Shown here: positions 1 to 64,000 of the stretch, in pieces
How the letters are laid out: the number at the start of each line of letters is the position of its first letter
How positions within the stretch are numbered: position 1 is the first letter of the stretch
Position numbers and translations under genes: made by a program
DNA from: Malacoraja senta
Lineage: Eukaryota
Reading direction: 5' to 3'
Assembly: GCA_038087875.1 (NCBI GenBank)
Contig: CM075995.1
Span: 9,734,001-9,798,000 of the forward strand
Length of the DNA: 64,000 nt
The notes under the pieces: model-generated
Database searches by the model: none
Told to the model about the DNA's origin: nothing
What the model saw: only the letters and a program-made list of their open reading frames with translations

Positions 1-3000
1 TTTCCTTTCTGCAGTCCATCAAACGTCTTCTTGTTGATGATCTTCGATTCCAACAACTCGCTGGCAGTAACCTTGTCCCGTAGTCCGGGGAAGAGTAGAT
101 GCTTCTTGGTCTCTGTTTCATCAATGGTGGTAATGATGAATTTAATGATGTGTTCGATGGTGACCTTTCCTGACCTGTACTGATGGATAAGGTCTCGGCG
201 TTGATCATCGGTTATATACTCCGAGTTGATCAACTCCCAGATTGTCACGGTCTTCCCAGAGAATTTTCCAGATGGGACACTCATCACAGCCTTTTGGAAA
301 ACGTCCTTGGTGATCTCCTCAGGGTGAAGGTGCACTCTCTTCACTGCTTCCTCTGTCAGGGGTAACAGGGAAAGGTGGGTCTCAGGGTCACTTCTGCATC
401 TCTGCTTCAGCTGTTGGTAGGTGACATGTTCGTCTGTATTTGGTTCAATGAAACCTTTAGTGTTCTCACTGGGAGTGGTCACCAATTGGTTCATTTCCTC
501 ATCGAACATTCCCCGCTTGTAGGCCACGTCCATGGGCAGCCGATGGCTGGTGTTGGGATCAATGATGCCACCAGATGCCACCTGTGCCTGCAGGAGCTGC
601 ACTCCATGATCTTTGGGTACCAGTTCCTTTCTCATTGCTTCAAACAAGGAGACCTTACGCCCGGTGTAAGGGTCCGTATATCCAGTTACCGCTTTCTCTG
701 CAGCCAGTAGCTTCTCATGGAGTTCAGGCCCAACGAGTCCATCCTTCACTGCCTCATCGACGGTGAGGGTGAGATTCTGCACAGGGTCAATGAGGAAACC
801 TGTTGCTGCCTGAGCTTCCAGTAAGATCTCCGCTGTTCTTGGTCTCAGCAGGTTCTTCTTCATTGCTTCATAGAAGCTCATTGTCTCCTGGGTAGGCTCC
901 ACAAACACTCCAGCAATGCTCTCCGACCCCTGAAGGAATTTCCTCACCGACTCCAACTTGCTCACATCTTCAGGTGTTGCCTTTCCTATCTGCAGTCCAT
1001 CAAACGTCTTCTTGTCGATGATCTTCGATTCCAACAACTCGCTGGCAGGAACCTTCTCCCTTAGTCCAGGGAAGAGCAGCTGTGGTTTTTTCTTTGTTTC
1101 TTTCTCTTCAATCACCGTGATGACAATTCTGATAATCTTTTCCACTGTCACCTTCCCTGACCGATACTGTCGAATCAGATCCTTCCTCTGCTCCTTGGTA
1201 AAGTACTCCGAATTAATAAGCTCCAAGATGCTGACAGTTTTCCCAGAGAAGATGCCAGCTGGAACAGACACTGTTGTCTTACCAAAAGTATCTCTGGTCT
1301 GCTCTTCATCATAAACAGGTTTTGATGATATTGCTTTCTCACTCAACGGCAAAAAGAGCTGACCTGACCCTGCATCCTTTCTGCACCTCTCCTTCAGCTG
1401 TTGGTAGCTGACGCTCTCATCCATGTTTGGATCATAGAAGCCCACCATGTTCTCACTGGGAGTGCTCACCAACAGGTTCATTTCCTCATCAAACATTCCC
1501 CGCTTGTAGGCCACGTCCATGGGCAGCCGATGGCTGGTGTTCGGATCAATTATGCCACCAGATGCCACCTGAGCCTGCAGGAGCTGCACTCCATGGTCTT
1601 TGGGCACCAGTTCCTTTCTCATTGCTTCAAACAAGGAGACCTTACGGCCGGTGTAAGGGTCCGTATATCCAGTTACCGCTTTCTCTGCAGCCAGTAGCTT
1701 CTCGTGGAGTTCTGGCCCAACGAGTCCATCCTTCACTGCCTCATCGACGGTGAGGGTGAGATTCTGCACAGGGTCCACGAGGAACCCTGTTGCTGCCTGA
1801 GCTTCCAGTAAGATCTCCGCTGTTCTTGGTCTCAGCAGGTTCTTCTTCATTGCTTCATAGAAGCTCATTGTCTCCTGGGTGGATTCCACAAACACTCCAG
1901 CGATGCACTCCGACCCCTGAAGGAATTTCCTCACCGAATCCAACTTGCTCACATATTCAGGTGTTGTCTTTCCTTTCTGCAGTCCATCAAACGTCTTCTT
2001 GTTGATGATCTTCGATTTCAACAGCTCGCTGGCAGGAACCTTGTCCCGAAGTCCGGGGAAGAGCAGCTGCTTCTTGGTCTCAGTTTCATCAATGGTGGTA
2101 ATGATGAATTTAATGATGTGTTCGATGGTGACCTTTCCTGACCTGTACTGCCACATTAGGTCCCGGCGTTGATCTTCGGTTATATACTCTGAGTTGATCA
2201 ACTCCCAGATTGTCACGGTTTTCCCAGAGAATTTTCCGGATGGGACACTCACCACAGCCTTTTGGAAAATGTCCTTGGTGACCTCTTCTGGGTGAAGGTC
2301 TACTCTCTTCACTGCTTCCTCAGTCAGGGGTAACAGGGAAAGGTTGGTCTCAGGGTCATTTCTGCATCTCTGCTTCAGCTGTTGGTAGGTGACATGTTCG
2401 TCTGTATTTGGTTCAATGAAACCTTTAGTGTTCTCACTGGGAGTGGTCACCAACTGGTTCATCTCCTCATCAAACATTCCACGCTTGTAGGCCACGTCCA
2501 TGGGCAGCCGATGGCTGGTGTTGGGATCAATGATGCCACCTGCTGCCACCTGTGCCTGCAGGAGCTGCACTCCATGGTCTTTGGGTATCAGTTCCTTTCT
2601 CATTGCTTCAAACAAGGAGACCTTATGCCCGGTGTAAGGGTCCGCATATCCCGTTACCGCTTTCTCCGCAGCCAGTAGCTTCTCATGGAGTTCTGGCCCA
2701 ACGAGTCCATCCTTCACTGCCTCATCGACGGTGAGTGTGCGATTCTGCACAGGGTCCACGAGGAACCCTGTTGCTGCCTGAGCTTCCAGTAAGATCTCTG
2801 CTGTTCTTGGTCTCAGCAGGTTCTTCTTCATTGCTTCATAGAAGCTCATTGTCTCCTGGGTGGGCTCCACAAACACTCCAGCGATGCTCTCCGACCCATG
2901 AAGGAATTTCCTCACTGACTCCAACTTGCTCACATCTTCTGGCATTGTCTTTCCTTTCTGCAGTCCATCAAACGTCTTCTTGTCGATGATTTTCGATTCC

Positions 3001-6000
3001 AACAACTCGCTGGCAGGAACCTTGTCCCGTAGTCCGGGGAAGAGCAGCTGTGGTTTTTTCTTTGTTTCTTTCTCTTCAATAACCGTGATGACAATTCTGA
3101 TGATCTTTTCCACTGTCACCTTCCCTGACCGATACTGTCGAATCAGATCCTTCCTCTGCTCCTCGCTAAAGTACTCCGAATTAATAAGCTCCAAGATGCT
3201 GACAGTTTTTCCAGAGAAGATTCCATCTGGAACAGACACTGTTGTCTTCCCAAACGTATCTCTGGTCTGCTCTTCATCATAAACAGGTTTTGATGATATT
3301 GCTTTCTCACTCAAATGCAACAAGAGCTGACCTGAGCCTGAATCCTTTCTGCACCTCTCCTTCAGCCGTTGGTAGCTGACGCTCTCATCCATGTTTGGGT
3401 CATAGAAGCCCACCGTGTTCTCATTGGGAGTGGTCACCAACTGGTTCATTTCCTCATCAAACATTCCCCGCTTGTAGGCCACGTCCATGGGCAGCCGATG
3501 GCTGGTGTTGGGGTCAATGATGCCACCAGATGCCACCTGTGCCTGCAGGAGCTGCACTCCATAGTCTTTGGGTACAAGTTCCTTTCTCATTGCTATAAAG
3601 AGGGAGACCTTACGCCCGGTGTAAGGGTCCGTATATCCCGTTACCGCTTTCTCTGCAGCCAGTAGCTTCTCATGGAGTTCTGGCCCAACGAGTCCATCCT
3701 TCACTGCCTCATCGACGGTGAGGGTGCGATTCTGCACAGGGTCAACGAGGAACCCTGTTGCTGCCTGAGCTTCCAGTAAGATCTCCGCTGTTCTTGGTCT
3801 CAGTAGGTTCTTCTTCATTGCTTCATAGAAGCTCATTGTCTCCTGGGTGGGCTCGACAAACACTCCAGCGATGCTCTCCGACCCCTGAAGGAATTTCCTC
3901 ACCGACTCCAACTTGCTCACATCTTCAGGTGTTGCCTTTCCTTTCTGCAGTCCATCAAACGTCTTCTTGTTGATGATCTTCGATTCCAACAACTCGCTGG
4001 CAGGAACCTTGTCCCGTAGTCCGGGGAAGAGTAGGCGCTTCTTAGTCTCAGTTTCATCAATGGTGGTAATGATGAATTTAATGATGTGTTCGATGGTGAC
4101 CTTTCCTGACCTGTACTGCCACATAAGGTCCCGGCGTTGATCTTCTGTTATATACTCTGAGTTGATCAACTCCCAGATTGTCACGGTTTTCCCAGAGAAT
4201 TTTCCGGATGGTACACTCAACACAGCTTTTTGGAAAATGTCCTTGGTGACTTCCTCTGGGTGAAGGTCCACTCTCTTAACTGCTTCCTCCGTCAGGGATA
4301 ACAGGGAAAGGTTGGTCTCAGGGTCACTTCTGCATCTCTGCTTCAGCTGTTGGTAGGTGACATGTTCGTCTGTATTTGGTTCAATGAAACCTTTAGTGTT
4401 CTTACTGGGAGTGGTCACCAACTGGTTCATCTCCTCATCAAACATTCCCCGCTTGTAGGCCACGTCCATGGGCAGCCGATGGCTAGTGTTGGGGTCAATG
4501 ATGCCACCAGATGCCACCTGTGCCTGCAGGAGCTGCACTCCATGGTCTTTGGGTACAAGTTCCTTTCTCATTGCTTCAAACAAGGAGACCTTACGCCCGG
4601 TGTAAGGGTCTGTATATCCCGTTACTGCTCTCTCCGCAGCCAGTAGCTTCTCATGGAGTTCTGGCCCAACAAGTCCATCCTTCACTGCCTCATCGACAGT
4701 GAGGGTGAGATTCTGCACAGGGTCAACGAGGAACCCTGTTGCTGCCTGAGCTTCCAGTAAGATCTCCGCTGTTCTTGGTCTCAGCAAGTTCTTCTTCATT
4801 GCTTTGTAGAAGCTCATTGTCTCCTGGGTGGGCTCCACAAACACTCCAGCAATGCTCTCCGACCCCTGAAGGAATTTCCTCACTGACTCCAACTTGCTCA
4901 CATCTTCAGGTGTTGCCTTTCCTTTCTGCAGTCCATCAAACGTCTTCTTGTCGATGATCTTCGATTCCAACAATTCGCTGGCAGGAACCTTGTCCCTTAG
5001 TCCGGGGAAGAGCAGCTGTGGTTTTTTCTTTGTTTCTTTCTCTTCAATCACCGTGATGACAATTCTGATGATCTTTTCCACTGTCACCTTCCCTGACCGA
5101 TACTGTCGAATCAGATCCTTCCTCTGCTCCTCGGTAAAGTACTCCGAATTAATAAGCTCCAAGATGCTGACAGTTTTCCCAGAGAAGATGCCAGCTGGAA
5201 CAGACACTGTTGTCTTCCCAAAAGTATCTCTGGTCTGCTCTTCATCATAAACAGGTTTCGAATATATTGCTTTCTCACTCAAGGGCAACAAGAACTGACC
5301 TGACCCTGCATCCTTTCTGCACCTCTCCTTCAGCCGTTGGTAGCTGACGTTCTCATCCATGTTTGGATCATAGAAGCCCGTGTTCTCACTGGGAGTGGTC
5401 ACCAACTGGTTCATCTCCTCATCAAACATTCCCCGCTTGTAGGCCACGTCCATGGGCAGCCGATGGCTGGTGTTGGGGTCAATGATGCCACCAGATGCCA
5501 CCTGTGCCTGCAGGAGCTGCACTCCATGGTCTTTGGGTACCAGTTCCTTTTTCATTGCTTCAAACAAGGAGACCTTACGCCCGGTGTAAGGGTCCGTATA
5601 TCCTGTTACGGCCTTCTCTGCAGCCAGTAGTTTCTCATGGAGTTCTGGCCCAACGAGTCCATCCTTCACTGCCTCATCGACGGTGAGGGTGCGATTCTGC
5701 ACAGGATCCACGAGGAACCCTGTTGCTGCCTGAGCTTCCAGTAAGATCTCCGCTGTTCTTGGTCTCAGCAGGTTCTTCTTCATTGCATCATAGAAGCTCA
5801 TTGTCTCCTGGGTGGGCTCAACAAACACTCCAGCAATGCTCTCTGACCCCTGAAGGAATTTCCTCACCGACTCCAACTTGCTCACATCTTCAGGTGTTGC
5901 CTTTCCTTTCTGCAGTCCATCAAACGTCTTCTTGTTGATGATTTTCGATTCCAACAACTCGCTGGCAGGAACCTTGTCCCGAAGTCCGGGGAAGAGCAGC

Positions 6001-8951
6001 TGCTTCTTGGTCTCAGTTTCATCAATGGTGGTAATAATGAATTTAATGATGTGTTCAATGGTGACCTTTCCTGACCTGTACTGCCACATAAGGTCCCGGC
6101 GTTGATCTTCTGTTATATACTCTGAGTTGATCAACTCCCAGATTGTCACTGTTTTCCCTGAGAATTTTCCGGATGGGACACTCACCACAGCCTTTTGGAA
6201 AACGTCCTTTGTGACCTCCTCTGGGTGAAGGTCCACTCTCTTCACTGCTTCCTCTGTGAGGGGTAACAGGGAAAGGTTGGTCTCAGGGTCACTTCTGCAT
6301 CTCTGCTTTAGCTGTTGGTAGGTGACATGTTCATCTGTATTTGGTTCAATGAAACCTTTAGTGTTCTCACTGGGAGTGCTCACCAACTGGTTCATTTCCT
6401 CATCAAACATTCCCCGCTTGTATGCCACATCCATCGGCAGCCGATGGCTGGTGTTGGGATCAATGATGCCACCAGATGCCACCTGCGCCTGCAGGAGCTG
6501 CACTCCATGGTCTTTGGGTACCAGTTCCTTTTTCATTGCTTCAAACAAGGAGACCTTACGCCCGGTGTAAGGGTCCGTATATCCCGTTACCGCTTTCTCT
6601 GCAGCCAGTAGCTTCTCATGGAGTTCTGGCCCAACTAGTCCATCCTTCACTGCCTCATCGACGGTGAGGGTGCGATTCTGCACAGGGTCCACGAGGAACC
6701 CTGTTGCTGCCTGAGCTTCCAGTAACATCTCCGCTGTTCTTGGTCTCAGCAGATTCTTCTTCATTGCTTCATAGAAGCTCATTGTCTCCTGGGTGGGCTC
6801 CACAAACACTCCAGCGATGCTCTCCGACCCCTGAAGGAATTTCCTCACTGACTCCAACTTGCTCACATCTTCTGGCATTGTCTTTCCTTTCTGCAGTCCA
6901 TCAAACGTCTTCTTGTCGATGATCTTCGATTCCAACAACTCGCTGGCAGGAACCTTGTCCCTTAGTCCGGGGAAGAGCAGCTGTGGTTTTTTCTTTGTTT
7001 CTTTCTCTTCAATCACCGTGATGACAATTCTGATGATCTTTTCCACTGTCACCTTCCCTGACCGATACTGTCGAATCAGATCCTTCCTCTGCTCCTCGGT
7101 AAAGTACTCCGAATTAATAAGCTCCAAGATGCTGACAGTTTTCCCAGAGAAGATTCCAGCTGGAACAGACAGTGTTGTCTTCCCAAAAGTATCTCTGGTC
7201 TGCTCTTCATCATAAACAGGTTTCGATGATATTGCTTTCTCACTCAAGGGCAACAAGAGCTGACCTGACCCTGCATCCTTTCTGCACCTCTCCTTCAGCT
7301 GTTGGTAGATGACGCTCTCATCCATGTTTGGATCATAGAAGCCCACCGTGTTCTCACTGGGAGTGGTCACCAACTGGTTCATCTCCTCATCAAACATTCC
7401 CCGCTTGTAGGCCACGTCCATGGGCAGCCGATGGCTAGTGTTGGGGTCAATGATGCCACCAGATGCCACCTGAGCCTGCAGGAGCTGCACTCCATGGTCT
7501 TTGGGTACCAGTTCCTTTTTCATTGCTTCAAACAAAGAGACCTTACGCCCGGTGTAAGGGTCTGTAAATCCCGTTACCGCTCTCTCTGCAGCCAGTAGCT
7601 TCTCATGGAGTTCTGGCCCAACGAGTCCATCCTTCACTGCCTCATCGACGGTGAGGGTGAGATTCTGCACAGGGTCAACGAGGAACCCTGTTGCTGCCTG
7701 AGCTTCCAGTAAGATCTCCGCTGTTCTTGGTCTCAGAAGGTTCTTCTTCATTGCTTCATAGAAGCTCATTGTCTCCTGGGTGGGTTCCACAAACACTCCA
7801 GCGATGCTTTCCGACCCCTGAAGGAATTTCCTCACCGATTCCAACTTGCTCACATCTTCAGGTGTTGCCTTTCCTTTCTGCAGTCCATCAAACGTCTTCT
7901 TGTCGATGATCTTCGATTCCAACAACTCGCTGGCAGGAACCTTGTCCCGTAGTCCAGGGAAGAGCAGCTGCTTCTTGGTCTCAGTTTCATCAATGGTGGT
8001 AATGATGAATTTAATGATGTGTTCGATGGTGACCTTTCCTGACCTGTACTGCCACATTAGGTCCCGGCGTTGATCTTCGGTTATATACTCTGAGTTGATC
8101 AACTCCCAGATTGTCACGGTTTTCCCAGAGAATTTTCCTGATGGGACACTCACCACAGCCTTTTGGAAAACGTCCTTGGTGACCTCCTCTGGGTGAAGGT
8201 CAACTCTCTTCACTGCTTCCTCCGTCAGGGATAACAGGGAAAGGTTGGTCTCAGGGTCACTTCTGCATCTCTGCTTCAGCTGTTGGTAGGTGACATGTTC
8301 GTCTGTATTTGGTTCAATGAAACCTTTAGTGTTCTCACTGGGAGTGGTCACCAACTGGTTCATCTCCTCATCAAACATTCCCCGCTTGTAGGCCACGTCC
8401 ATGGGCAGCCGATGGCTGGTGTTGGGGTCAATTATGCCACCAGATGCCACCTGAGCCTGCAGGAGCTGAACTCCATGGTCTTTGGGTACCAGTTCCTTTC
8501 TCATTGCTTCAAACAAGGAGACCTTACGCCCGGTGTAAGGGTCCGTATATCCCGTTACTGCTTTCTCTGCAGCCAGTAGCTTCTCATGGAGTTCTGGCCC
8601 AACGAGTCCATCCTTCACTGCCTCATCGACGGTGAGGGTGCGATTCTGCACAGGATCCACGAGGAACCCTGTTGCTGCTTGAGCTTCCAGTAAGATCTCC
8701 GCTGTTCTTGGTCTTAGCAGGTTCTTCTTCATTGCTTCATAGAAGCTCATTGTCTCCTGGGTGGGTTCCACAAACACTCCAGCAATGCTCTCCGACCCCT
8801 GAAGGAATTTCCTCACCGACTCCAACTTGCTCACATCTTCAGGTGTTGCCATTCCTTTCTGCAGTCCATCAAACGTCTTCTTGTCGATGATCTTCGATTC
8901 CAACAACTCGCTGGCAGGAACCTTGTCCCGTAGTCCAGGGAAGAGCAGCTG
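1..8951 (-). repeat. Coding tandem array of PRD+linker units; unit starts at 8951, 7970, 6983, 6002, 5018, 4037, 3050, 2069, 1082, 101
   Basis: Spacings are 981, 987, 981, 984, 981, 987, 981, 987, 981, all multiples of 3. The same periods appear in the recurring antisense ORFs at 958, 1945, 2926, 3913, 4894, 5878, 6859, 7846, 8827. Confidence 0.96.
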
Positions 8952-10435
8952 CTTCTTGGTCTCAGTTTCATCAATGGTGGTAATGATGAATTTAATGATA
9001 TGTTCGATGGTGATCTTTCCTGACCTGTACTGACGGATAAGGTCCCGGCGTTGCTCTTCAGTGATATACTCTGAGTTGATCAACTCCCAGATTGTCACGT
9101 TTTTTCCAGAGAATTTCCCGACTGGCACAGATACAGTGGCTGTTTTGAAGATGTCGTGTGTCTGTTCCATGGTATATCCTCCCTTTTTTGTCTCTGCTCC
9201 CTCGGTCAATGGCAATAGAAAAAGGCCAGATTCCTGATCCTTCTGACACCTGTCCAGCAGCTGGAGGTACGTTAAGTTCTCCTGTGTGTTGGGGTCAAAG
9301 AATGCCTTGGCATTGTCACTGTCTCCTGCAACTATTGTATTCATGTCCTCTGTGAATATACCCTGTTTGTATGCTTGGGCCAGGGGCATGCGATGGCTGT
9401 TCACTGGATCAATGACACCACCAGTGGCAATCTGTGCCTGCAGCAAACGGATGGCGTAACTTGGGGAGATCAAGTCCTTTTGCATTGCTTGAAATAAGGA
9501 GATCTGGTCGCCAGTGTAGGGGTCCCTGTAACCTGTCACTGCCCTCTCTGCAGAGAGCAGTTTCTCCTGCAGCTCTGGTCCGACCACTCCCTCCCTGATG
9601 GCCTCGTTGACGGGCAGTTTCCTGTTCTTTGCTGGGTCAATGATGAAGCCGGATGCTGCCTGAGCCTCCAGCAACACCGTAGCTGTGGTGGGCTTTAATT
9701 GTCCCCTTTTCATTGCCTGGTAAATGCTGACTTTCTCCTTTGAGGGCTGAATGATCAGGCCAGCAACACAGCTCTTGCCCTGCAGATAGTTCTGAACATC
9801 TTCCTTCTGTGACAGATCCTTGACGGAGACGGATCCTTTCTTCAGTTTGTCCAACTGCTTCTTGCTGAGAATGCCCACCTGATGTAAGCGAGCGGCTGGC
9901 ACTGACTGGCGCAGGCCACTGAAGGAGAACGCAGCCTCGGCACTTTCCTGGGCAGAGTCCACCACATCCCGACCGTTGGCAAGAGCTCCCAGAGTGGGGG
10001 CAGTCGCTGCCTGCACTTTGGCGGTCTCTTTGGATATGACTTCAAGCTTCTGAGCTTTCAGTTGCTCCAGCAATTCCCTGAGTGCTTGGTTCTCATCAGC
10101 CAGCTGCTTCTCTTTCTCCTGTCTCCTCTTCTCCATTTCCTGAAGCTCTCTCTGCTTCTCCTGGACTTGGTCCTCAGCCTCTCTCTGCATCCTGAGTGCT
10201 TCATCCATACTATCCTGAAGTCGGGCCTTGTCGTCCTTGAGTTTCTTCATTTCCATCATCTGTTCATCCTTCAGAGACTTGGATTTCTGCAGCTCATCCT
10301 CATATAGATGCTCCAACTTCTGCTTCTCCGCCTCAATCATCTTCTCTTTCTGATCAGCAGCTCCTTTTCACTGAGAAAGGATTGTTGAAGGACCTGTGTG
10401 GTGTGGACAATTTCTTTCTTTTTCCCTGCCTCCAT
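1..10435 (-). CDS. PLEC: PLEC terminal exon (32-equivalent), partial: rod end plus at least 11 plakin repeat domains; apparent -1 frameshift at ~10353
   Basis: gtgcag|ATG GAG GCA gives [27 protein letters not shown]. After the shift it reads [20 protein letters not shown]...LANGRDVVD...[13 protein letters not shown]. The same codon phase holds at 10352, 8951 and 59, and the ORF track shows no stop-terminated ORF in this frame. Confidence 0.95.
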
Positions 10436-13400: not shown

Positions 13401-16400
13401 CATGGCCAGCCATGTGTGGAGACACGGCACATGGGTGAGATTTTCAATGAATATTTCTAAGCTAATTTGAAAAGAACAGCGCAACACAGAAACAGGGCCA
13501 TTGGCCCAAAATGTCCTTGCCCAACATGATACCAAACTAATCTAATCTTGTCTGCTTGCACGTGATCTATATCCCTCCATTCCATGCACATCCATTTGCC
13601 TACCTTAAACCTTCTTATGCACCCACTATCATATCTGCTTCCACTACCGACCCTGGTAAAACATCGAAGCTGTTAAGGGTCGTGCCATTTACTGTATTCT
13701 TCAATGAACTCTCAAAGTGCACACCAAACACATGCCCGGATCAAACTCCATCTGCCATTTCTCTGCCTATATATGTTGGCGATCTGTATTCCACTTTATC
13801 CTTTATGCCTTCCTCAATGTCAGATGACTCAAATGTTGGTGTCATCTACAAGCCTAATAATCAACACTTATGTCCAAATCATTCATATATATATTATATA
13901 TTATATATTAGTGTGTGTGTGTGTGTGTGTATGTGTGTGTGCGCACATATATATNNNNNNNNNNNNNNNNNNNNNNNNNNNNNNNNNNNNNNNNNNNNNN
14001 NNNNNNNNNNNNNNNNNNNNNNNNNNNNNNNNNNNNNNNNNNNNNNNNNNNNNNNNNNNNNNNNNNNNNNNNNNNNNNNNNNNNNNNNNNNNNNNNNNNN
14101 NNNNNNNNNNNACAGACCTCCAGCCTGAATAATGTTCTTCCATCACAACCCTCTGTCTTCTAACAGTAAACCAGTCTGAATTGAAACAACCAAGTCACCG
14201 TGAATCTCAAGTATCTTAATCTTCTGGATCAGCTACACAAGGGAATGTCTTACTAACATCCATGTAGACAATATCCATTGCCCTATTCTCACTGATCACC
14301 TTTGTCACCTCCTCGAAAACTCAATGAACTTAGTAAAACATGCTAACTGTCCCTAATTAGCCCATTATCTTCCTAATTGGAACAACCTGTCTGGAAGAAT
14401 CCTCTGACATCTTCCTTTGAGGCACACCGGCCATTTTTTTCCTGGATTATCCGCATCTCCCTAGTTTATCTTTATTTCCATTCTTAAACAAGACTTCATC
14501 AATTCCATTGGGCTTTGGGGATTTATCCATCTTAATGCTCTATAAGAGGCCCAATACTACCTTCTACTTGATCTCAAACTGCCCTTGCCTATTACTTTAT
14601 TCCACGCGGATCTCACTGTCCCCCATGTCCTTCTCCTTGGAGAATACCCCAATCGTACATTAAGGTTAGGGTTACTTCAAGTAACCCCTGCATTCCCCTC
14701 TCTCCATCCCTCCGCTTTCCCAGTTCTCCGACAAGTCTGACTGTCTCCGAGTACATTATATCTCTGTTTGCTTTGTTGTTACCTTCTGCTAGCTAACCAT
14801 GATCTATCCTACATTTTCCATGATCTACATCCACCTTTGTCCTGGTTTCACACCTTACACTTCCTTATCTACGTATTTCCCTCTCCCATGACATCAGTCT
14901 GAAGAAGGGTCTCGACCCAAAACATCACCCATTCCTTCGCTCCAGAGATGCTGCCTGTCCGGCTGAGTTACTCCAGCATTCTGTGCCAATCTTCGGTTTA
15001 AACCAGCATCTGCAGTTCCTTCCAACACAACCCCTCATAATATAGGTGTCCCATCCCGTCACCCTCCTCCACTCCAGGATATTATTGCTATTGATGGAGT
15101 GCAGCGTACGTTCACCAGGTTAATTCCCGGGATGGCGGGATTGACGTATGATGAAAGAATGGGTCGACTGGGCTTGTATTCACTGGAATTTAGGATGAGA
15201 GGATATCTTATAGAAATATATAAAATTATTAAGGGATTGGACAGAATGCAGGAAAAAATGTCCCGATGTTGGGGGAGTCCAGAACCAGGGGTCACAGTTT
15301 AAGAATAAGGGGTAGGCCATTTAGAACTGAGATGAGGAAAAACCTTTTAACACGGAGAGTTGTGAATTTGTGGAATTCTCTGCCTCAGACGGCAGTGGAG
15401 GCCAATTCACAGGATGCATTCAAGAGTGAGTTAGATTTAGCTCTTAGGGCTAAGGGAATCAAGGGATATGGGGAGAAGACAGGAGCGTGGTACTGATTGT
15501 GGATGATCAGCCGTTATCACATTGAATGGCGATACTGGCTCGAAGGGCCGAATAGCCTACTCCTGCACCTGTGTTCTATGTATCTATGTAACAGGACCAA
15601 CCTCCCTAATCTCTCCTTGTACCTGAGCTGTCCTTTCTCAACCTGGGTACAATGAGGTCAGGTCAGCAAGGATCAGATCAGGTCAGGACCTACCTCCTTG
15701 GTTTTCTGCTGCAGCAACTCTGCCTCTTTCCTCAGCTTCTCCTTCTCACTCTCCAACTCAGCGATAGCCATCTGCAACTCGCTCGCCTCCTGCTTGCTCT
15801 GCTTCCACTGGTGCTCCAGTCTCTCCACAATGCTGTTCTTTTCCCTGGTGCTCTGCTCAGTTTCATGAAGCCTCAAGCCGATCTGTTTTGCCTCATCCTT
15901 GAACTTCTGAGCCTCTCTCTCTGCCTTGCCCTGGGCATCTGTCAGTTCCGATACCAGGGCCTTCAGCTGATCGGCTTCGTCGCTGATCTCCTGTTGCCGT
16001 CTCCGCTCCTCCTCCAAAGCCTTCTGGAACTCCTCTGCCTCCTCATGGCGACGTTGCTGCATCTCCTGCTTGTCCTTTGACAGTTTCTTGGCCTGCTGCT
16101 GCGCCTTGTCTCTCTGCTTCTGCAGCATCTCAGCCTCGGCCTTTAGCCTGCTCGCCTCCTGGATGGCCTGCATCTTCTCCTTCAGCATCTTGTCGGCCAG
16201 AGCCCGCTGCTGGGCCAGGTCTTCCTCAGCCAGTCTCCTCTGCCGGGCAGCCTCCTGGGCTTCCACGCTAAGGCGGGCCGCCTCCTCTGCCAGCTGCCGC
16301 ATCTTCTTTGCCTCCTCCGCCAGGTGCTTCTGGGTGTTGTCCTTGTCCTTCAGCACCAGCATCTTGTTCTCCTCCTCGATCCTGCCCTTCAGTTTGATCA

Positions 16401-19400
16401 GCTCCTCCATCTGTACCCGCACCTTCAGGAGCTCCCCCTCCGCCTGGTTCTTCTGCTTCATGGACTCGCTCACCTCAGCCTTCAGCCGCTGCAGCTCTTC
16501 GTCCAGCACCTCCTTCTGGTGGTCCGTCTGCTCCAGACGCAGCTTGATCTTGGCCAGCTCCTGCTCCACGCTGGCCTTCTGCCGCAGGGTCTGCTCCGCA
16601 AACTTCTTGTGCTTCTCCATGTCGGCGTCAGCGGCTTGCTTCTGCCTCAGAGCTGCCTGCTCGGCCTGTGCTCTCCGTGCAGCTTCCAGCTCAGCCTCCT
16701 TCCTCTGCTGCTCGGCAGCCTGCTGGGCCTGGGCCTTGAGGCCAGCCTCCTGCTCGGCCTGTTGCTGCAGCCGCTCCGCCTCCTCGGCTTGCTGTCTGCA
16801 CAGGGCGGCCTCGCGCTCTGCCTGCACCCGGGCCTGCTGGGCCTCTTCGGCCAGTCGCCGGGCCTGCTCGGCCTGCTCCCGCAGGCTGCCCAGCGCACTC
16901 TGTTCCTGTAGCCGGCTCTGCAGCAACTCCTCCTCCTTCTGCTGCACGGCTGCCTGGTGCGCCTTCTCCTCGGCCACAAGCCGCTGCTGGGCCGCCTCCT
17001 GGGCAAGGCTGACCTGCCTGTCTGCCTCTTGCTCCGCCACCTCTTTCTGCTTCCACGCCTCCTCCGCCCTCCTCTTCAGCCGCTTCACCTCCTCCAGGGC
17101 TGCCTGCCGCTGTCGCCCTGCCTCCTCCTCTGCCGCCAGGATCTCCTTTACTCTGCGCTCTGCCTCCTGCCTCCTCCTCGCCTCCTCGCCCGCCATCCCT
17201 CGCTGCCTCTCTGCTTCCTCCTCCGCCTCCTGCTTGCTGCGCTGAGTCTCCTCAGCCACCCTCTTCAGCTTGGCCAGCTCGATCTCCAGGTCTGACTTGC
17301 CCTCTGAGGCCTTCTCGAAGTTGAGCTTCAGGACCCTGATCTCCTCCTCCACAATACGCCTCTGCTTCAGGGTCTCCTCCACCACCACCTTCTGCCGCTC
17401 CAGCTCCACATCCGAGCTCTTCCTCAGCTGCAGAATCCTTTTCTCAATGTCCTGCTTATGCTGCATGGCTTGTTCTTCCAGAAGCTTCCGTTGAAAGGCC
17501 TCGTCTTCAGCCAGGCGCCGCAAGCGCTCGTTCTCCGCTTCTTTCTCCTTCAGAACCATCTCAGCCTCCGTCTTCAGACGGGTTCCTTCGTTAATGGCTG
17601 CCAGCTTCTCCTTCAGGATCCTCTCTGCCTCGCTGCGCTGATGCACCACCTCTTCCTCGGCAAGCTGCCTCTGCCGTTTAGCCTCCTCCGCCACAGCCCG
17701 CAGCCTGCCCGCCTCGTCGGCCAGCTGCCTCATCCTCTCCGCCTCCTTCTCCAGGATCTGCTTGGTCTTCTCTGAGGTGGACCTGGTCTCCTCCTCCGTC
17801 TTCACTTTCAGCAGCAGCAAGGCCTCCATCTCGGCCTTCACCCGGGCCAGCTCCTCCTCCAGCAGCTTCCTCTGGTGGAGGACCTGGTTCACCTCATTCT
17901 TCAGTCGGTACAGTTCCTCCTCCAGGAGCAGCCTTTGCTGCTCCCCGTTGTCAGTCTCTGCCCGCAGCCGGATGAGCTCCTGCTCGGCAGCCAGCTTTTG
18001 CCCGGCTGTCTGGTCCGCCAGCCGTCTCTGTTTCTCCAGCTCCTGCTCCGCCATGTCCTTCTGCCGCAGCGCCGACTCCTCCGTCTTTGTCCTGCGCCTC
18101 GCCTCCCGGTCCGCCTCCTCCTTCTGCTTCTCTGCCTCCTCTTGCGCCAGTGATTTCTGGAGAGCCACCTCCTCTGCTTGTAACCGCAGGCGCAGAGCCT
18201 CGTTGGCCTTCTGCCTCCACTTCTCCAGCTCCATCTCCGCGCCCTCCTGCAGCCTCTTCAGCTCGGCCGCCTCCTGCTGCAGCTGGGCCACCGTCTGGTG
18301 CTCCTGCTGCAGGGATATCTCCAGCTGTAGCGTCTTCTCCTCGAAGGACATGCGCTTGCTCTGCAGCTCAGCCGCCGCACTTTTCCGGGCCACCTCTTGG
18401 GTCACCAGCAGTTGCTTCTCTTTTTCAATCTCTGCCTGCTTCATCCTCCGCTCCACCTCCTCCGCCACGTTCTTGAAGTGCTGCAGGTCCTCCAAGGCCT
18501 TCTGCTTCTCCCGAGCTGCGTCCCTCTCCGCCTGGATCTTCACCTTCAGCTGCTCCTCTGCCTGCTTCTTCTTGGACGTCTCATCATTGACCTGCCGGAG
18601 CAGTCTCTCTGCCTCATCCTGCGCCGTCTTCCTCTGCCGGTCTGCCTCATCTGCGCGACTCTTTAGCTGCAGCAGCTCTGATTCTGCCGCCGCTTTCTGC
18701 TTCTGCGCTGTCACCAGCTGGACATGGATAATGCGGATCTCCTCCTCCACCTTGGTACGACTGAGCAGCACCTCCTCCACCATGACAGTCTTTTTCCTGA
18801 TCTCCATCTCGGAGGAGCTTTGCAGCTGCTGGAATTCTTGCTGCACGTTCTGCTTCTGTTGCTCAGCATCCACTGCCACGGCCTCCCTCCTGGTCACCTC
18901 CTTCTCGATCCTCTGCTGCAGCTCCTTGGCCGCTTTCTCTGCCTCCACCTTGGCCTTGGCGTGGGCTGCAGCCAGCTCCTTCTGCCTCTCCAACTGCGCC
19001 TCCACCTCTTCCAGCCGCCGACGTTCCTCCTCCTTCATCTTCTCAGCAGCTTCCTAAAGACCAACACACAAGGGCAGGGTTAGTGAGGGAGCGGTCTCGG
19101 GCAGTGGAAGAGATGAGTGTAGTTGTGCAGACCCCGTTCACCAACACACGAGGGCAAGGTCAGTGAGGGGCAGGGTTAGTGAGGGAGCATTCCCACCCTG
19201 TGGAAGAGATGAGTGTAGGTGTGGAGACCCCGTTCACCAACACACAGGCGCAGGGGCAATGAGGGGCAGGGCCAGTGAGGGGCAGGGCCAGTGAGGGGAA
19301 GGGCCAGTGAGGGGCAGGGCCAGTGAGGGGCAGGGCCAGTGAGGGGCAGGGCCAGTGAGGGGCAGGGCCAGTGAGGGGCAGGGCCAGTGAGGGGCAGGGC

Positions 19401-22400: not shown

Positions 22401-23457
22401 ACACACTGCCAATGGCCACTACGCAGACTGCCAGTGACCACTACACACACTGCCTCTGCCCCCAACTGCCGTAGCCTCACCTCCTCGTTCTCCAGCCGAT
22501 GCAGGGTGACAGTGATGAACTTCAGGTACTGGCTGGACAGTGTCATCAGCTCAATGTAGCGACTCCTCAGATCCACAACCTGCAACGAGAGCACAAAACA
22601 GGCTGAGTCTAGACAGCACAGAACAGGCTGAGTATAGAGAGCGCAGAGCAGGCTGGGTGCATAGAGCACAGAACAGGCTGGGTGTAGAGAGCACAGAACA
22701 GGCTGGGTGTAGAGAGCGCAAAACAGGCTCGGTGTAGAGAGCGCAGTACAGGCTGGGGGTAGAGAGCGCAGAACAGGCTGGGTGTAGAGAGCGCAGAACA
22801 GGCTGGGTGTAGACAGCACAGAACAGGCTGGGGGTAGAGAGCACCGAACGACCCAGGTGTAGAGAGCACAGAACAGGCTGGGGGTAGAGAGCACCGAACA
22901 GGCTGGGTGTAGAGAGCGCAGAACAGACTGGGTGTAGAGCATAGAACAGGCTGGGGGTAGAGCGTGCAGAATGTGCTGGAGTAGAGCTCGCACTGGCCAT
23001 GTGCTGTGGTTGGGCTCCGCAGAAATGATGGGAGATATTTGGTGGATGGGTTGGAGGGAGATGGGGAATAAATGCCATCCACCCAAGTGTGTTATTTGTC
23101 CATAACTCATTGGTTGGTGGAAGTCCGAAACAACGACACCTTCATGAATCCTGGGTGAAGTCACAGTCCTAGTGCAGCGTAGGCACAGACCCTTTGGCCC
23201 AACCAGTCAATGCTGTTCACTCCCATAAGGAGGGGGTGGGGGACATGTCACTGGATGTGTGGGAAGTTCTCCAGGGGAGAGAGATGTTGGTGACTGGATT
23301 CCCACCTCCTGAATGACGTTGTCTGATGCTGAGACCAGCTTCTGCTTCTTCACAGGAGACGCCACAGGTTCACTCTGGACTTTGTATGTCACCAACTGGA
23401 GCTCATAGTCCTGAAATGCAGAGACAGTCGGTGAGGATCCACGGTGTGGGTGTGTGG

Positions 23458-23491
<34 letters not shown>

Positions 23492-26400
23492 CGCTGCATG
23501 TGTGCGTGTGAGCACATGTGCATCTGCGTGCGTGTGTCTGATTGCGTGCACGTCTCCGTGCGAGCCAGTGTGCGTGTGTGTGCAAGTGTCAGTGTGCGTG
23601 TGTGCGCGTCAGTATAAGTGCGTGCGTATGTGTCAGTGTGCGTGTGTGTGTGTCAAGTGTAAGTGCGTGCGTATGTGTCAGTGTGCATGTGTGAGTGAAT
23701 GCGGGCGTGTCAGTGTGCGTGTGTGCTTCAGTGTGAGTGCGTGTGTGTGCATCAGTGGGAGTGCGTGCGTATGTGTCAGTGTGCGCGTGAGTGTAAGTGT
23801 GTGTGTATGTGTCAGTGTGTGTGTGTTTGCATCAGGGTGCATGAGTGTCAGTGTGCATCAGCGTGCATCAGCGTGCGTGCGTGAGAGTGCATGCGTGTCA
23901 GTGTGAGCGCATGCGTATGTGTCAGTGTGCGGGTGTGTGCGTCAGAGGGCGTGCGTGTCAGTATGCATCAGCATGAGTGCGTACATCAGCGTGCATGTGT
24001 CAGCGTACGTGTGTGCGTCAGTGTGCATGCGTGTGTGCATCAGGGTGCGTGCGTCTGTGCATCAGGGTGCGTGCGTCTGTGCATCAGTGTGCGTGCGGCA
24101 GTGTGCGTGCGTGCGTCAGGGGGTGTGCGTGTGCGTCAGTGTGCATGCATCAGGGTGCGTGCGTCAGTGTGCGTCAGGGTATGTGCATGTGTGCATCAGT
24201 GTGTGTGTGCATGCGTTTGTGCATCAGGGTTCGTTCGTGTGCCTGCGTGTGCATCAGTGTGTGTGTGCATCAGTGTGCGTGTGTGCGTGCATGTGTCCAT
24301 CAGTGTGCGTGCGAGTGTGCATCAGTGTGCGTGCGTCAGTGTGCGTGCGTGCATGCACACGTGTGCGTCAGTGTGCATGTGTGTCAGTGTTTGTGGCATC
24401 AGAGTGCGTGCGGGTGTGTCAGTGTGCATCAGCGTGCGTGCGTGCATCAGCTTTGCAGTTGTGTGCATGTATGTGCGCGTGCATGCATGAAGCCAATGCG
24501 TGTGTGTGAGTGTGAGAGGCCGGTGTGTGCTCATCTTTTTCCTCATCTCTGTCCTAAATGGCCTACCCCTTATTCTTAAACTGTGACCCCTGGTTCTGGA
24601 CTCCACCAAAATCGGGAACAGTTTTCCTGCATCTTGACTGTCCAATCCCTTGAGAATTTTATATGTTGCTATGATCCCCTTTGATCCTTCTAAATTCCAG
24701 TAAATACAAGCCCAGTCAACCCATTCTTTCATCATGTCAGTCCTGCCATCCTGGAAATTAATCTGGTGAACCTACGCTGCACTCCCTCAATAGCAAGAAT
24801 GTCCTTCCTCAAATTAGGAGACCAAAACTGCACACAATACTCCAGGTGTGGTCTCACCAGGGCCCTGTACAACTGCCGCAGGATATCCTTGCTCCTAAAC
24901 TCAAATCCTCTCGCAATGAAGCCCAACATCCCATTAGCTTTCTTCACTGCCTGCTGTACCTGCATGCTTACTTTCAGTGACTGATGTACAAGCACACCCA
25001 GGTCTCGTTGCACCACCCCTTTTCCTAATCTGACACCATTCAGATAATAATCTGCCTTCCTGTGCTTGCCACCAAAATGGATAACCACGCATTTATCCAC
25101 ATTATACTGCATCTGTCAAGCATTTGCTCACTCACCCAACCTATGCAAGTCACCCTGCAACCTCATAGCATCCTCATCGCAGCTCACACTGCCACCCAGC
25201 TTTTTGTCATCCGCAAACTTGGAGATGTTACATTTAATTCCCTCGTCTAAATCGTTAATATATATTGTAAATAACTGGGGTCCCAGCACCAAGCCTTGCG
25301 GCACCCCAGTAGTCACTGCCTGCCATTCTGAAAAGGACCCATTAATTCCTACTTTTTGCTTCCTGTCTGCCAACCAGTTCTCTATCCATGTCAATACCCT
25401 ACCCCCAATACCACGTGCTCTAATTTTGCACCCTGATCTCTTGAGTGGGACCTTGTCAAAGGCTTTTTGAAAGTCCAGATACACCACATCCACTGGCTCT
25501 CCCTTATCCATTCTACTTGTTACATCACCAAAAAATGCCAGAAGATTAGTCCAGAATAATTTCCCCTTCATAAATCCATGCTGACTTTGACTGATCCTGT
25601 CACTGCCTTCCGAATACGCTGCTATAACAACGTAATTAATCGACTCAAGCATCTTCTCCATTACAGATGTAATAGGCCTGTCCCACTTAGGCGGCTTTTT
25701 AGGTGACTGCATGAGACTATGCAGTCGCCACATGGTCGCCACATGTTCGCGGGTGGTTGCCGGGGAGTCGCCTTCATGGTCGCGAGGAGTTCCTGCGTTC
25801 TGGGAACTGGTCGCGGCCTCATTATGGTCGCCGCACATTTTTCACCATGTTGAAAGATTTGTGGCAACGAGAATGAAGCCGCCATGGAGAGTAGCGAGAA
25901 TTCTCGTGCCATAGGAGGGTCGCCAGGAGGTCCTAATGGATTGTCAGGAGGTCGAAGGTTCTCGTAAGTTGGAGCCGGTGCTGACCGGTGAATTTCATTT
26001 ACTCATTGGGGTAAAAAAAGGTAAGCAGTCGTTTTCAGAACCAAGGATACCCGACCGGTAACGTCAAATGTCGTTAAATGTAACGTTAAATGTCGAACTT
26101 CACAGCCGTGTATCTCTGGCTTCTTAAAAGTTATCTCCACTCCTTCTCCCCCCCTTTTTAAAAGGACTTACTATACACTGTGCTTTAGCTGTCTTAATTA
26201 CAGCGCCAACCTTCCTGTTCATCGCGGTGTGTGTCTGTATCACCTTGGCTTTGCACAATCTGAATTTTTTAGACAGTGCTCCGCCTGCTTGCCCTGTCCC
26301 CTGCCTGCATAACGGGCTGGTGAAGGAAGCGATGCGTTTGTGTGTGTTCCACTCTGACAGTCGCCGTTCCAGTTGCCAGTTTTTCAGGCGACTTGACAGT

Positions 26401-26661
26401 CACCGGCAGTCCGCTGAAAAATCACCTAAGTGGGACAGGCCCATAAGGCTAACTGGTCTATAATTCCCCGTCTTCTCTCTCCCTCCTTTCTTAAAAAGTG
26501 AAGTTACATTGGCTACCCTCCAGTCCACAGGAACTGATCCAGAGTCGAGAGAACATTGGAAAATGATCACCAATGATTAGTCAAGCATGATTTCCCCTTC
26601 ATAAATCCATGCTGACTTTGACCGATCCTGTCACTGCTTTCCAAATGTGCTGCTATAACGA

Positions 26662-26744
<83 letters not shown>

Positions 26745-58932: not shown

Positions 58933-59119
58933 CTGAAATAGTGGCACACAGGACGGGTCAACGGCATCAACACCCTGACCATTCCCTGAACACAGCATGG
59001 GGCGGGCAATGGCAATGAGACCCTGACCTTGAACACAAGACAACGGGATCAAGATCCTGACCGTTACCCAAAACACCCGGGGAGTCAACGGGCATTGAAA
59101 TCAAATCATTCAGAGGGGA

Positions 59120-63600: not shown

Positions 63601-64000
63601 ACTGATGCTGGGGACAATGTCTCTGTCCCAGGAGGATGTGTGCGTGGGACGTGGGGGGAGTGTGTGTGTGTGTGTGTGTGGGGGGGGGGGGGGGAGGGAA
63701 GCCTGTGGGGAAGGGGGGGGAGTGTGTGTGTGTGTGGGGGGGAGGGAAGCCTGTGGGGAAGGGGGGGAAGTGTGGGAGGGGGGGGTAGTGTGTGTGTGGG
63801 AGGGGGGGTAGTGTGTGGTGTGTGTGTGGGAGGGGGGGGTAGNNNNNNNNNNNNNNNNNNNNNNNNNNNNNNNNNNNNNNNNNNNNNNNNNNNNNNNNNN
63901 NNNNNNNNNNNNNNNNNNNNNNNNNNNNNNNNNNNNNNNNNNNNNNNNNNNNNNNNNNNNNNNNNNNNNNNNGTTTCCCCGCAAGGCTATGGACCATACT

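Follow-up and report, generated by a model that had tools for sequence, protein, structure and literature searches.

To our knowledge, reviews describe the tail of plectin as a fixed set of six plakin repeat domains (PRDs), and arrays of PRDs which are variable and homogenised are known from epiplakin only. The locus described here, a window of 64,000 nucleotides from the skate Malacoraja senta (contig CM075995.1), raises the question of whether plectin itself may carry an array of this kind and, if so, where it would come from. Our answer, which we hold with considerable confidence, is that the window contains a skate plectin with an expanded, in-frame array of B-type PRDs of two types, a and b, derived from the B2 region of plectin itself, and that its tail would be multivalent.

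The plectin gene and its terminal exon

About two thirds of a plectin gene, from its 3' side, are found in the window, and the skate is close to Amblyraja radiata. The plakin-domain exons, the rod exon and the terminal exon are found on one strand and in this order:

22454..58938, minus strand: about 19 small plakin-domain exons (spectrin repeats and SH3), from a tblastn exon map with residues 356-1364 of Hemitrygon plectin
42311-42481 and 42667-42822, minus strand: examples of plakin-domain exons, SH3
34814-34999, 33737-33895 and 44094-44225, minus strand: other examples of plakin-domain exons
15694..19053, minus strand: rod exon, 1120 coiled-coil codons in one exon, from the open reading frame and splice sites
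3..10435, minus strand: plectin terminal exon, with the rod end, PRD B1 and the a/b array; it leaves the window at position 1

Pfam detects SH3_10 (56 bits), Spectrin_2 (72), SR_plectin_7 (57) and Spectrin_3 (64) in the plakin-domain exons. The rod exon is bounded by an acceptor (tttag/GAAGCT, 19054/19053) and a donor (AAGGAG/gtaggt, 15694/15693), and the rod is 97.5% identical to that of A. radiata, 95.9% to Rhinoraja, 83% to Hemitrygon and 77% to Stegostoma. The best match is the "plectin isoform X1" of Amblyraja radiata (98%). This match, together with the presence of the three kinds of exon on one strand, supports the identification as plectin made in the initial annotation. Desmoplakin, dystonin and epiplakin were also considered as the identity of the gene, they were rejected because of the similarity of the rod to plectin rods (77-97.5%), the GSR tail of the orthologues and the tree described below. 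Residues 1-355 of Hemitrygon plectin have no match inside the 64-kb window; the complete orthologues carry PF00307, which corresponds to the two N-terminal, actin-binding CH domains, and in M. senta this part of the gene would be located past position 64000.

In its general structure, the gene resembles plectin (PLEC) of bony vertebrates, with SH3-bearing plakin exons, a giant exon for the rod and a giant terminal exon coding for all PRDs. B1, B4, B5 and C are clearly orthologous, and a GSR tail is found in the orthologues.

The terminal exon starts at a splice acceptor (tgcag/ATGGAG) located at 10436/10435, and not at 10367. The exon aligns with the A. radiata plectin model (P0001) from residue 1845 on. 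On the minus strand, translation from 10367 to 3 gives 3455 codons without a stop, in agreement with the open frame of about 3450 codons to the window edge reported previously. The stop at 10368-10370 is an assembly artefact, because the assembly misses one base at 10346/10347. Full-depth contigs contain an extra base at this position (38.9/38.9 in run X1, 3.57/3.57 in run X2), and when it is restored the translation agrees with the A. radiata model.

Pfam finds 31 Plectin-repeat stretches in the open frame, with an E-value of 0 for the whole protein. Weak matches over the whole frame to PT-TG, ZNF598 PAH, NADH_4Fe-4S and Corona_NS2A have been dismissed: No single stretch passes alone, and these scores appear because they are summed over ten repeats. 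TRF, whose longest period is 500 nt, does not report any tandem repeat between positions 1 and 12000, because the period of the array exceeds this limit.

Two alternating types of array unit

Anchor motifs return every 327 or 329 amino acids along the frame. With unit borders set by motif spacing and HMM, the frame divides into a divergent first unit, nine complete ones and a partial one, the complete units having 327-329 amino acids. The features of the terminal exon are as follows:

9930..10435, minus strand: last 168 coiled-coil rod codons (approximately) and the segment ahead of the first PRD, from the translation, aligned to residues 1845-2014 of P0001
10346..10347, minus strand: 1-base assembly deletion within an A-run, which breaks the frame between 10435 and 10367
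8949..9929, minus strand: U1, PRD B1 and linker, 327 amino acids, a divergent first unit (54-58% identity to the other units)
99..8948, minus strand: U2-U10, nine complete array units, from identity tables
7968-8948, 6000-6980, 4035-5015, 2067-3047 and 99-1079, minus strand: a-type units U2, U4, U6, U8 and U10 (327 amino acids)
6981-7967, 5016-5999, 3048-4034 and 1080-2066, minus strand: b-type units U3, U5, U7 and U9 (328-329 amino acids)
3..98, minus strand: start of U11, first 32 codons of an eleventh unit, with core sequence which is alike in a and b

U1 is 99.1% identical to unit 1 of A. radiata, and in the tree it is found within the B1 clade, alongside B1 of coelacanth, opossum, newt and bichir. 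Units are built from a PRD of 245 amino acids followed by a linker of 82-84 amino acids, with three or four Plectin stretches per unit according to Pfam. They measure 981, 984 or 987 nt, each value being divisible by three, as had been stated before.

A characteristic feature of the array is the alternation of its units. Copies of the same type have 94-98% identity in protein and 94.5-96.6% in DNA. When a and b units are compared the identity is 80-84%, and the true period of the array is 1965-1968 bp. In the skate, a and b units share 96-97% identity in the PRD core, and only about 60% in the linker and the last part of the PRD. The U11 fragment fits type a or type b equally, because cores match between types.

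The initial annotation described nine complete units and a partial one, all of them near-identical and 327-329 amino acids long. The counts and lengths are correct, the single family is not: The alternation of a and b had been overlooked, as well as the contrasting behaviour of cores and linkers. The identities between copies of the same type agree with two other statements made there, that the array has the near-identity of epiplakin and that each copy carries private substitutions.

The array is genuine, in frame and under purifying selection. The DNA divergence between copies is 3.5-5.5% and mostly synonymous; dS among copies is 0.11-0.18, with a dN/dS of 0.13 in a units and 0.20 in b units. 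The word depth of the array in two DNA runs is 6-22 times that of single-copy sequence. For example, the depth over U2 is 136-849, as compared with 38.9 for single copy, in run X1 (which may be the assembled sample), and 16-55 as compared with 3.6 in run X2; these figures are summed contig word depths, not copy numbers. Divergence, dN/dS and depth all agree with the previous suggestion that the copies are not assembly duplicates.

Plectin has many isoforms, some of them rodless, and in principle the array could be present in the genome and largely missing from the mature protein, either through unannotated splicing inside the exon or because the main isoforms end earlier. We consider this improbable. 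An open frame of 3455 codons and the low dN/dS found in every copy require translation, and the gene models of nine species retain the array in the coding sequence. In runs from related skates, which are only guessed to be RNA, contigs cover the array, including a unit-to-unit junction, at a depth at least five times that of the downstream unique contig. A contig of 4113 nt in the guessed-RNA runs exits the array downstream. A hole over PRD1 is also observed in these runs from relatives, probably a filter effect.

It is very improbable that the copy number is an assembly artefact, in which an array of 4-5 units would have been inflated by mis-joined long reads or tandem haplotypes. The divergence between copies, mostly synonymous, is unlike that of duplicated reads or alleles, and the unique parts differ by only 1-2.5% in protein from another species. 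The raised depth appears in two runs which correspond to different samples, and an exact a-type contig of 127 nt has 5.6 times the single-copy depth, yet it is found only once in the window. It is true that the assembly holds errors, the 1-base deletion mentioned above and four N gaps, and that the A. radiata model has fewer array units (7 plus a'); on the other hand, the independent Rhinoraja assembly has 10 array units.

Origin of the array and its distribution in cartilaginous fishes

In a tree of 95 units, the a and b units belong to the plectin clade (SH-aLRT 97), where they are placed with B1 and B2 of plectin. Epiplakin units are found in other clades: The PRDs of the epiplakins of Narcine, zebrafish, a tortoise and paddlefish group separately. 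Narcine also has a separate epiplakin gene model, and the chromosome-scale contig on which it is found carries the plectin of this species as well. As shown by these comparisons, the array arose within plectin, not from epiplakin. It is formed by B-type PRDs expanded from plectin's own B2 region, located after the rod end and PRD B1.

Epiplakin is typified by tandem PRDs which are nearly identical, most of the matches to the array are epiplakins, EPPK1 is found near PLEC in many vertebrates (PMC8782857), and some automatic models fuse both genes, such as Prochilodus P0122, in which a C-type PRD is followed by epiplakin-like units; nevertheless, it is scarcely credible that the array is EPPK1, or a piece of EPPK1 joined to plectin by mis-assembly or ectopic recombination, since it is read in the same open frame as the rod tail and B1, the arrays of the orthologues lie upstream of B3, B4, B5 and C, not behind them, the array units cluster with plectin B1 and B2, apart from epiplakin PRDs, and Narcine has its own epiplakin model on the contig of plectin.

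The plectin array is similar to epiplakin in several aspects. Both have long tandem arrays of B-type PRDs with linkers, whose copies are nearly identical inside one species and whose number changes from one species to another, and multivalent binding to intermediate filaments is presumed. Epiplakin is different in being a separate gene with neither plakin domain nor rod, while the skate array shares its frame with the rod tail; its PRDs belong to separate clades, and the skate repeat is a two-unit module with anciently different linkers, set between unique plectin PRDs. A study on copy-number variation of epiplakin in mouse, to judge by its title, is among the references of PMC8782857.

The same gene, with the same a/b array, is found in the gene models of A. 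radiata ("plectin isoform X1"), Rhinoraja longicauda, Narcine, Hemitrygon, Stegostoma and Heterodontus, as well as in the "plectin-like" model of Mustelus; they differ from M. senta in the number and order of units. In automatic gene models of nine chondrichthyans, whose assemblies are of unequal quality, we count 7 PRDs in chimaera and white shark, 9-10 in other sharks and a stingray (10 in two sharks and a stingray), 12 in Narcine and A. radiata, and 15 in Rhinoraja. The order of units is (a-b)x4.5 or more in M. senta, as compared with a-b-b-a-b-a-a' in the model of A. radiata and (a-b-a)x3-a' in that of Rhinoraja. Within a species, the coding VNTR proposed in the initial annotation is a possibility; as far as the available models indicate, even close skates differ in the number and order of their units. 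The tails of the two B2-like units of chimaera share 79% identity, and when they are compared with a and b tails the values are 62-71% for both types.

The initial annotation considered the expansion to be lineage-specific, a suggestion which does not agree with the models of nine chondrichthyans with 7-15 PRDs. It also mentioned that its interpretation would be refuted if the expansion had already been reported as standard for chondrichthyan plectin. This is half the case, because of these same nine gene models: The architecture is standard in databases, but it appears in no paper found. In the literature outside subscription journals, our search has retrieved no account of plectin with additional PRDs, and no discussion of chondrichthyan plectin gene models has been found in searchable papers.

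Among bony vertebrates, plectin has 6 PRDs in coelacanth, bichir, newt and opossum, as compared with 10 full PRDs and the start of an eleventh up to the window edge in the skate. The B2 position is occupied in the skate by the alternating a/b array, with homogenised cores, and in array-bearing plectin the core of B3 is overwritten by array sequence.

Cores and tails behave differently. The identity between a and b cores inside one species is 86-97.5%, while a cores of the skate are 78-86% identical to a cores of sharks or rays. On the other hand, a and b tails are 59-67% identical everywhere, and tails of the same type are 73-84% identical across species. The comparison of tails shows that the two linker types go back at least to the divergence of sharks and rays. 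In each species the PRD cores are kept alike, a pattern consistent with gene conversion or unequal crossing-over. The unit found after the array has a B3-like tail and an array-like core, and homogenisation also extends into the core of the neighbouring B3. Because of this mixed nature, the placement of B3 is unstable, it is basal in one tree and inside the array clade in another, and its position in the tree alone therefore supports no claim.

A more ambitious interpretation, which we find rather doubtful, is that the array of elasmobranch plectin might be a selected coding macrosatellite of variable copy number. The a-b module would be reshuffled even between close skates, gene conversion would be confined to the cores, so that every filament-binding surface stays alike and the two ancient linkers remain intact, and the number of units would tune the reach and valency of the tail towards intermediate filaments. 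If this is true, the locus would provide a natural allelic series relating PRD valency to cytolinker function.

Predicted tail and filament binding

Up to five further units (a', B3, B4, B5 and C) are found after the array in skate orthologues. Orthologues finish with B4, B5, the filament-binding linker, a C-type PRD and a GSR tail, as seen in the closest ones, P0001 and P0121. By homology, the array of M. senta would continue beyond the window edge and would be followed by a', B3, B4, B5, the C-type PRD and the GSR tail. A total of at least 15 PRDs is expected, in agreement with the previous estimate of 12 or more, and a protein of roughly 7,200-7,500 amino acids; beyond the window, the count and the C-terminal end are taken from other species.

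The array PRDs have the B-type fold (4.5 plectin repeats, similar to desmoplakin PRD-B) according to Pfam, phmmer and Foldseek. Residues 3-245 of U2 match desmoplakin PRD-B (1LM7) with an E-value of 5e-83 in phmmer. The AlphaFold model, in which the linker is also predicted to be folded, has a pLDDT of 86; when compared with 1lm7_A by Foldseek, it gives a TM of 0.97, an rmsd of 1.2 A and 56% identity. Desmoplakin PRD-B (PDB 1LM7, 5DZZ) is the closest solved structure to the skate array PRD. Desmoplakin itself is different, it has three PRDs (A, B and C) and a very short link between A and B, as compared with the skate linkers of 82-84 amino acids, which are predicted to be folded.

The main filament-binding site of mammalian plectin is the linker between B5 and C. 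In envoplakin, vimentin binding needs the groove residues R1895, K1901, R1914, R1952 and K1994 (PMC4782060). At the corresponding positions, four out of five residues are K or R in all units from U2 to U10; the fifth is Q, as compared with L in desmoplakin PRD-B. PRD-B grooves are only moderately basic (PMC4782060). Each added PRD may keep a basic groove and bind intermediate filaments, which would give the array a multivalent filament-binding function. Compared with the tail of bony vertebrates and its six PRDs, the skate tail would be a longer filament binder of higher valency. It might work like an epiplakin array, but anchored to the rod, plakin domain and actin-binding end of plectin.

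In summary, this is a variant of a well-known protein family, whose sequences are already found in public gene models. Giant PRD exons are readily collapsed or frame-broken in assemblies, as in the case of 10346/10347, and therefore the counts obtained from gene models need long-read checks. The locus is a good natural case for the study of gene conversion whose tracts end sharply within a coding exon. Plectin itself can bear a PRD array of this kind, and among cartilaginous fishes its PRDs number from 7 to 15 or more; the locus is also useful for asking whether the number of PRDs matters to intermediate-filament binding.

Structure of the plectin gene and its repeat array

A frame scan of the window reveals 3455 codons without a stop on the minus strand, from 10367 to 3; within the first 12 kb the remaining frames are open for 134 codons at most. 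This frame contains 31 Plectin-repeat stretches (Pfam), and its anchor motifs are spaced by 327 or 329 residues. Cutting by motif spacing gives the following units (U1 to U11), each formed by a plakin repeat domain (PRD) and its linker.

8949-9929, minus: U1
below U1 down to 99, minus: U2 to U10. U2, 4, 6, 8 and 10 are type a (327 aa each); U3, 5, 7 and 9 are type b (328-329 aa each)
3-98, minus: first 32 codons of U11

U1 is only 54-58% identical to the remaining units. Within each type, identity among U2-U10 is 94-98% at the protein level and 94.5-96.6% at the DNA level; whole a and b units share 80-84%. The initial annotation described near-identical PRDs expanded in the terminal exon of plectin. 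The open frame, the Pfam repeats and the unit table confirm the expansion and the recurrence every 327-329 aa, but the units are of two alternating types, so the true period is about 1968 bp.

The apparent start of the frame at 10367 is due to an assembly error. The acceptor site of the terminal exon (tgcag followed by ATGGAG) is at 10436/10435, minus strand. Translation from this site agrees with the Amblyraja radiata protein until a frame slip in the A-run at 10346/10347. Contigs from two DNA runs of the same organism (X1 and X2) both insert one base there at full depth: The assembly is short of one base of the run, which creates a false stop at 10368-10370. With this base restored, the exon is open from 10435 on.

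Other exons of the gene are found upstream.

19053-15694, minus: coiled-coil rod, a single exon of 1120 codons with canonical splice sites
between 22454 and 58938, minus: about 19 small exons, collinear with residues 356-1364 of complete stingray plectin

The small exons match Pfam SH3_10, Spectrin_2, SR_plectin_7 and Spectrin_3. In mammalian PLEC one giant rod exon is followed by one giant PRD exon, and the skate gene has the same layout. The top database match is "plectin isoform X1" of A. radiata (P0001). Identity to this protein is 97.5% for the rod and 99.1% for the first PRD (B1), so the window comes from another skate near that species. Orthologues end with B4, B5, the C-type PRD and a GSR-rich tail, as is typical of plectin. 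Both the actin-binding domain and the C-terminal end fall beyond the window. The rod exon, the plakin-domain exons on the same strand and the best match all agree with the gene being plectin, as annotated initially.

Copies of the same type differ by 3.5-5.5% in DNA. These differences are mostly synonymous (dS 0.11-0.18), with a dN/dS of 0.13 in type a and 0.20 in type b, a pattern that reads or alleles in duplicate would not give. In each of X1 and X2 one contig crosses from exon to intron unbroken, therefore both runs are DNA. Word depth in the single-copy flank is 38.9 in X1 and 3.6 in X2. An a-type contig of 127 nt, with one exact match in the window, has a depth 5.6 times that of single copy; other a copies in the window have 1-3 mismatches to it, so it takes in only part of their words. 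Over U2 the word depths add up to 136-849 (X1) and 16-55 (X2). Such sums of contig depth cannot be read as copy numbers, and X1 is possibly the assembled sample. These figures thus support only two statements: The array has not been over-assembled, and it probably extends past the window edge. Sequence differences, low dN/dS and raised depth in two DNA runs show that the copies are not assembly duplicates.

Runs from related skates, guessed to be RNA, have contigs over the array at high depth, including one unit-unit junction and one 4113-nt contig which exits the array downstream. In the runs X3, X16, X17 and X20, 40-47% of the words sampled from the PRD1 region (9073-10435) are indexed, with zero mapped depth. 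This gap probably reflects a filter dropping records similar to human DNA, and we draw no inference from it.

Distribution and origin of the array

PRDs in public plectin models, counted with an HMM built from the units in the window
PRDs: Species
6: coelacanth, bichir, newt, opossum
7: Callorhinchus, Carcharodon
9: Mustelus
10: Stegostoma, Heterodontus, Hemitrygon
12: Narcine, A. radiata
15: Rhinoraja

In both other skates (A. radiata and Rhinoraja) the array is closed by the units a', B3, B4, B5 and C. The window contains ten full units plus the first codons of an eleventh ahead of any of these, therefore we expect a total of at least 15 PRDs, where 12 or more had been anticipated. The protein should have roughly 7,200-7,500 aa if the upstream part is given about 2,480 residues, as numbered in Hemitrygon, and the downstream part 1,250-1,580, as numbered in A. 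radiata.

The expansion had been proposed to be lineage-specific, which it is not. It is a graded trait of chondrichthyan plectin (7-15 PRDs), with the highest known numbers in skates, and is already present in automatic gene models. The interpretation of the gene as plectin with an expanded, epiplakin-like array is nevertheless right in kind. Unit order differs among three close skates: a-b repeated in the window, a-b-b-a-b-a-a' in A. radiata and (a-b-a)x3-a' in Rhinoraja (P0121). These may be true rearrangements or faults of the other assemblies.

Some very long "plectin" models, found among P0122 (Prochilodus), P0127 (Oncorhynchus mykiss) and P0195-P0216 (gar, many birds), are read-through fusions, so protein length alone is no guide to PRD number. 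The unit HMM finds epiplakin-like units after the plectin C-type PRD in P0122 and P0127. Other long bony-fish and bird models have GAS2 and EF-hand in precomputed Pfam, which fits MACF1CTL, the gene neighbouring plectin (PMC8782857).

A full-text search of literature outside subscription journals found no description of extra PRDs in any cartilaginous-fish plectin. The closest paper is a study of epiplakin, which assigns PLEC of the thorny skate to a separate scaffold and is silent on PRD number (PMC8782857).

A tree of 126 units resolves B1, B4, B5 and C as clean orthologue groups covering all jawed vertebrates sampled, and places every a and b unit in one chondrichthyan clade beside B1 and B2. 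An epiplakin origin is very unlikely: When epiplakin PRDs of four species are added, they form separate clades and a/b stay in plectin. The array therefore grew out of plectin's own B2 region.

With residue 200 as the dividing point, we have split each unit into core and tail (the last 45 PRD residues plus the linker). In the core, a and b share 96-97% identity in skates and 86-92.5% in sharks and rays, but same-type cores of the window and of sharks or rays share only 78-86%. Tails of a and b are 59-67% identical in every species, with saturated dS, and pair by type across sharks and rays (73-84%). Both linker types are thus older than the shark-ray split, and the cores have been homogenised lineage by lineage. 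This pattern is what gene conversion or unequal crossing-over would leave if the tracts ended near codon 200. The unit after the array, B3, has a B3-like tail and an array-like core, 92.5% identical to the a core of the window in A. radiata. Elasmobranch B3 is such a mosaic, its core being 82-92% identical to array cores (P0001 4640-4972, P0069 4612-4944, P0059 4617-4949). Homogenisation has therefore reached B3 as well, and its mosaic nature explains why B3 shifts place between the two trees.

Repeats and mobile elements in the introns

The introns contain several repeated sequences.

35294-41341: G-rich minisatellite of 6 kb in a plakin-domain intron, with a unit of 17-18 nt in about 340 copies
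31717-33266: minisatellite, neighbouring intron, periods 33/60/93 nt
33924-34349: minisatellite, neighbouring intron, period 22 nt
34422-34803: minisatellite, neighbouring intron, period 21 nt
43084-44074: minisatellite, neighbouring intron, period 18 nt
24732-25838, 28233-28729, 30657-31434, 52657-53998, 60277-60666; 44966-46896; 47769-48233: mobile-element fragments, called from ORF translations alone

The G-rich tract has a GC content of 70-78% and a GC skew of about +0.85. The last 18 codons of exon 41413-41523 recur at 35180-35233, so the tract is flanked by a duplicated exon end. The other four minisatellites contain several long spurious ORFs (450-2000 aa) on both strands. Mobile-element fragments include pieces of reverse transcriptase (both strands), an element in which a reverse-transcriptase start precedes a GIY-YIG-like nuclease motif, and one Tc1-like transposase piece. 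In X1 the summed word depth over segment 11208-12000 rises to about 4 million (39 for single copy), with numerous contig variants and loose ends, which marks the segment as a very abundant interspersed repeat in the skate genome.

Predicted structure and function of the array

Residues 3-245 of U2 match desmoplakin PRD-B (1LM7) with an E value of 5e-83. Modelled with AlphaFold, an a-b pair has a mean pLDDT of 86, with zero residues below 50. Each modelled PRD fits 1LM7 with a TM of 0.97 and an rmsd of 1.2 A, the same predicted fold; how the two PRDs are oriented to each other is uncertain (pTM 0.46). For the 82-84-aa linker the model predicts a folded state with a hairpin and helices, not disorder (pLDDT about 68-86).

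Vimentin binding by envoplakin requires five basic groove residues (PMC4782060). We have placed these positions in the skate units via the 4QMD alignment: Four of the five carry K or R throughout U2-U10, the fifth carries Q. Such a composition fits the "moderately basic groove" of B-type PRDs (PMC4782060). We infer that each array unit is able to bind intermediate filaments. The array would thus lengthen the plectin tail and raise its valency. Multivalent binding is the presumed mode of action of the epiplakin array, and the skate plectin tail may act likewise.
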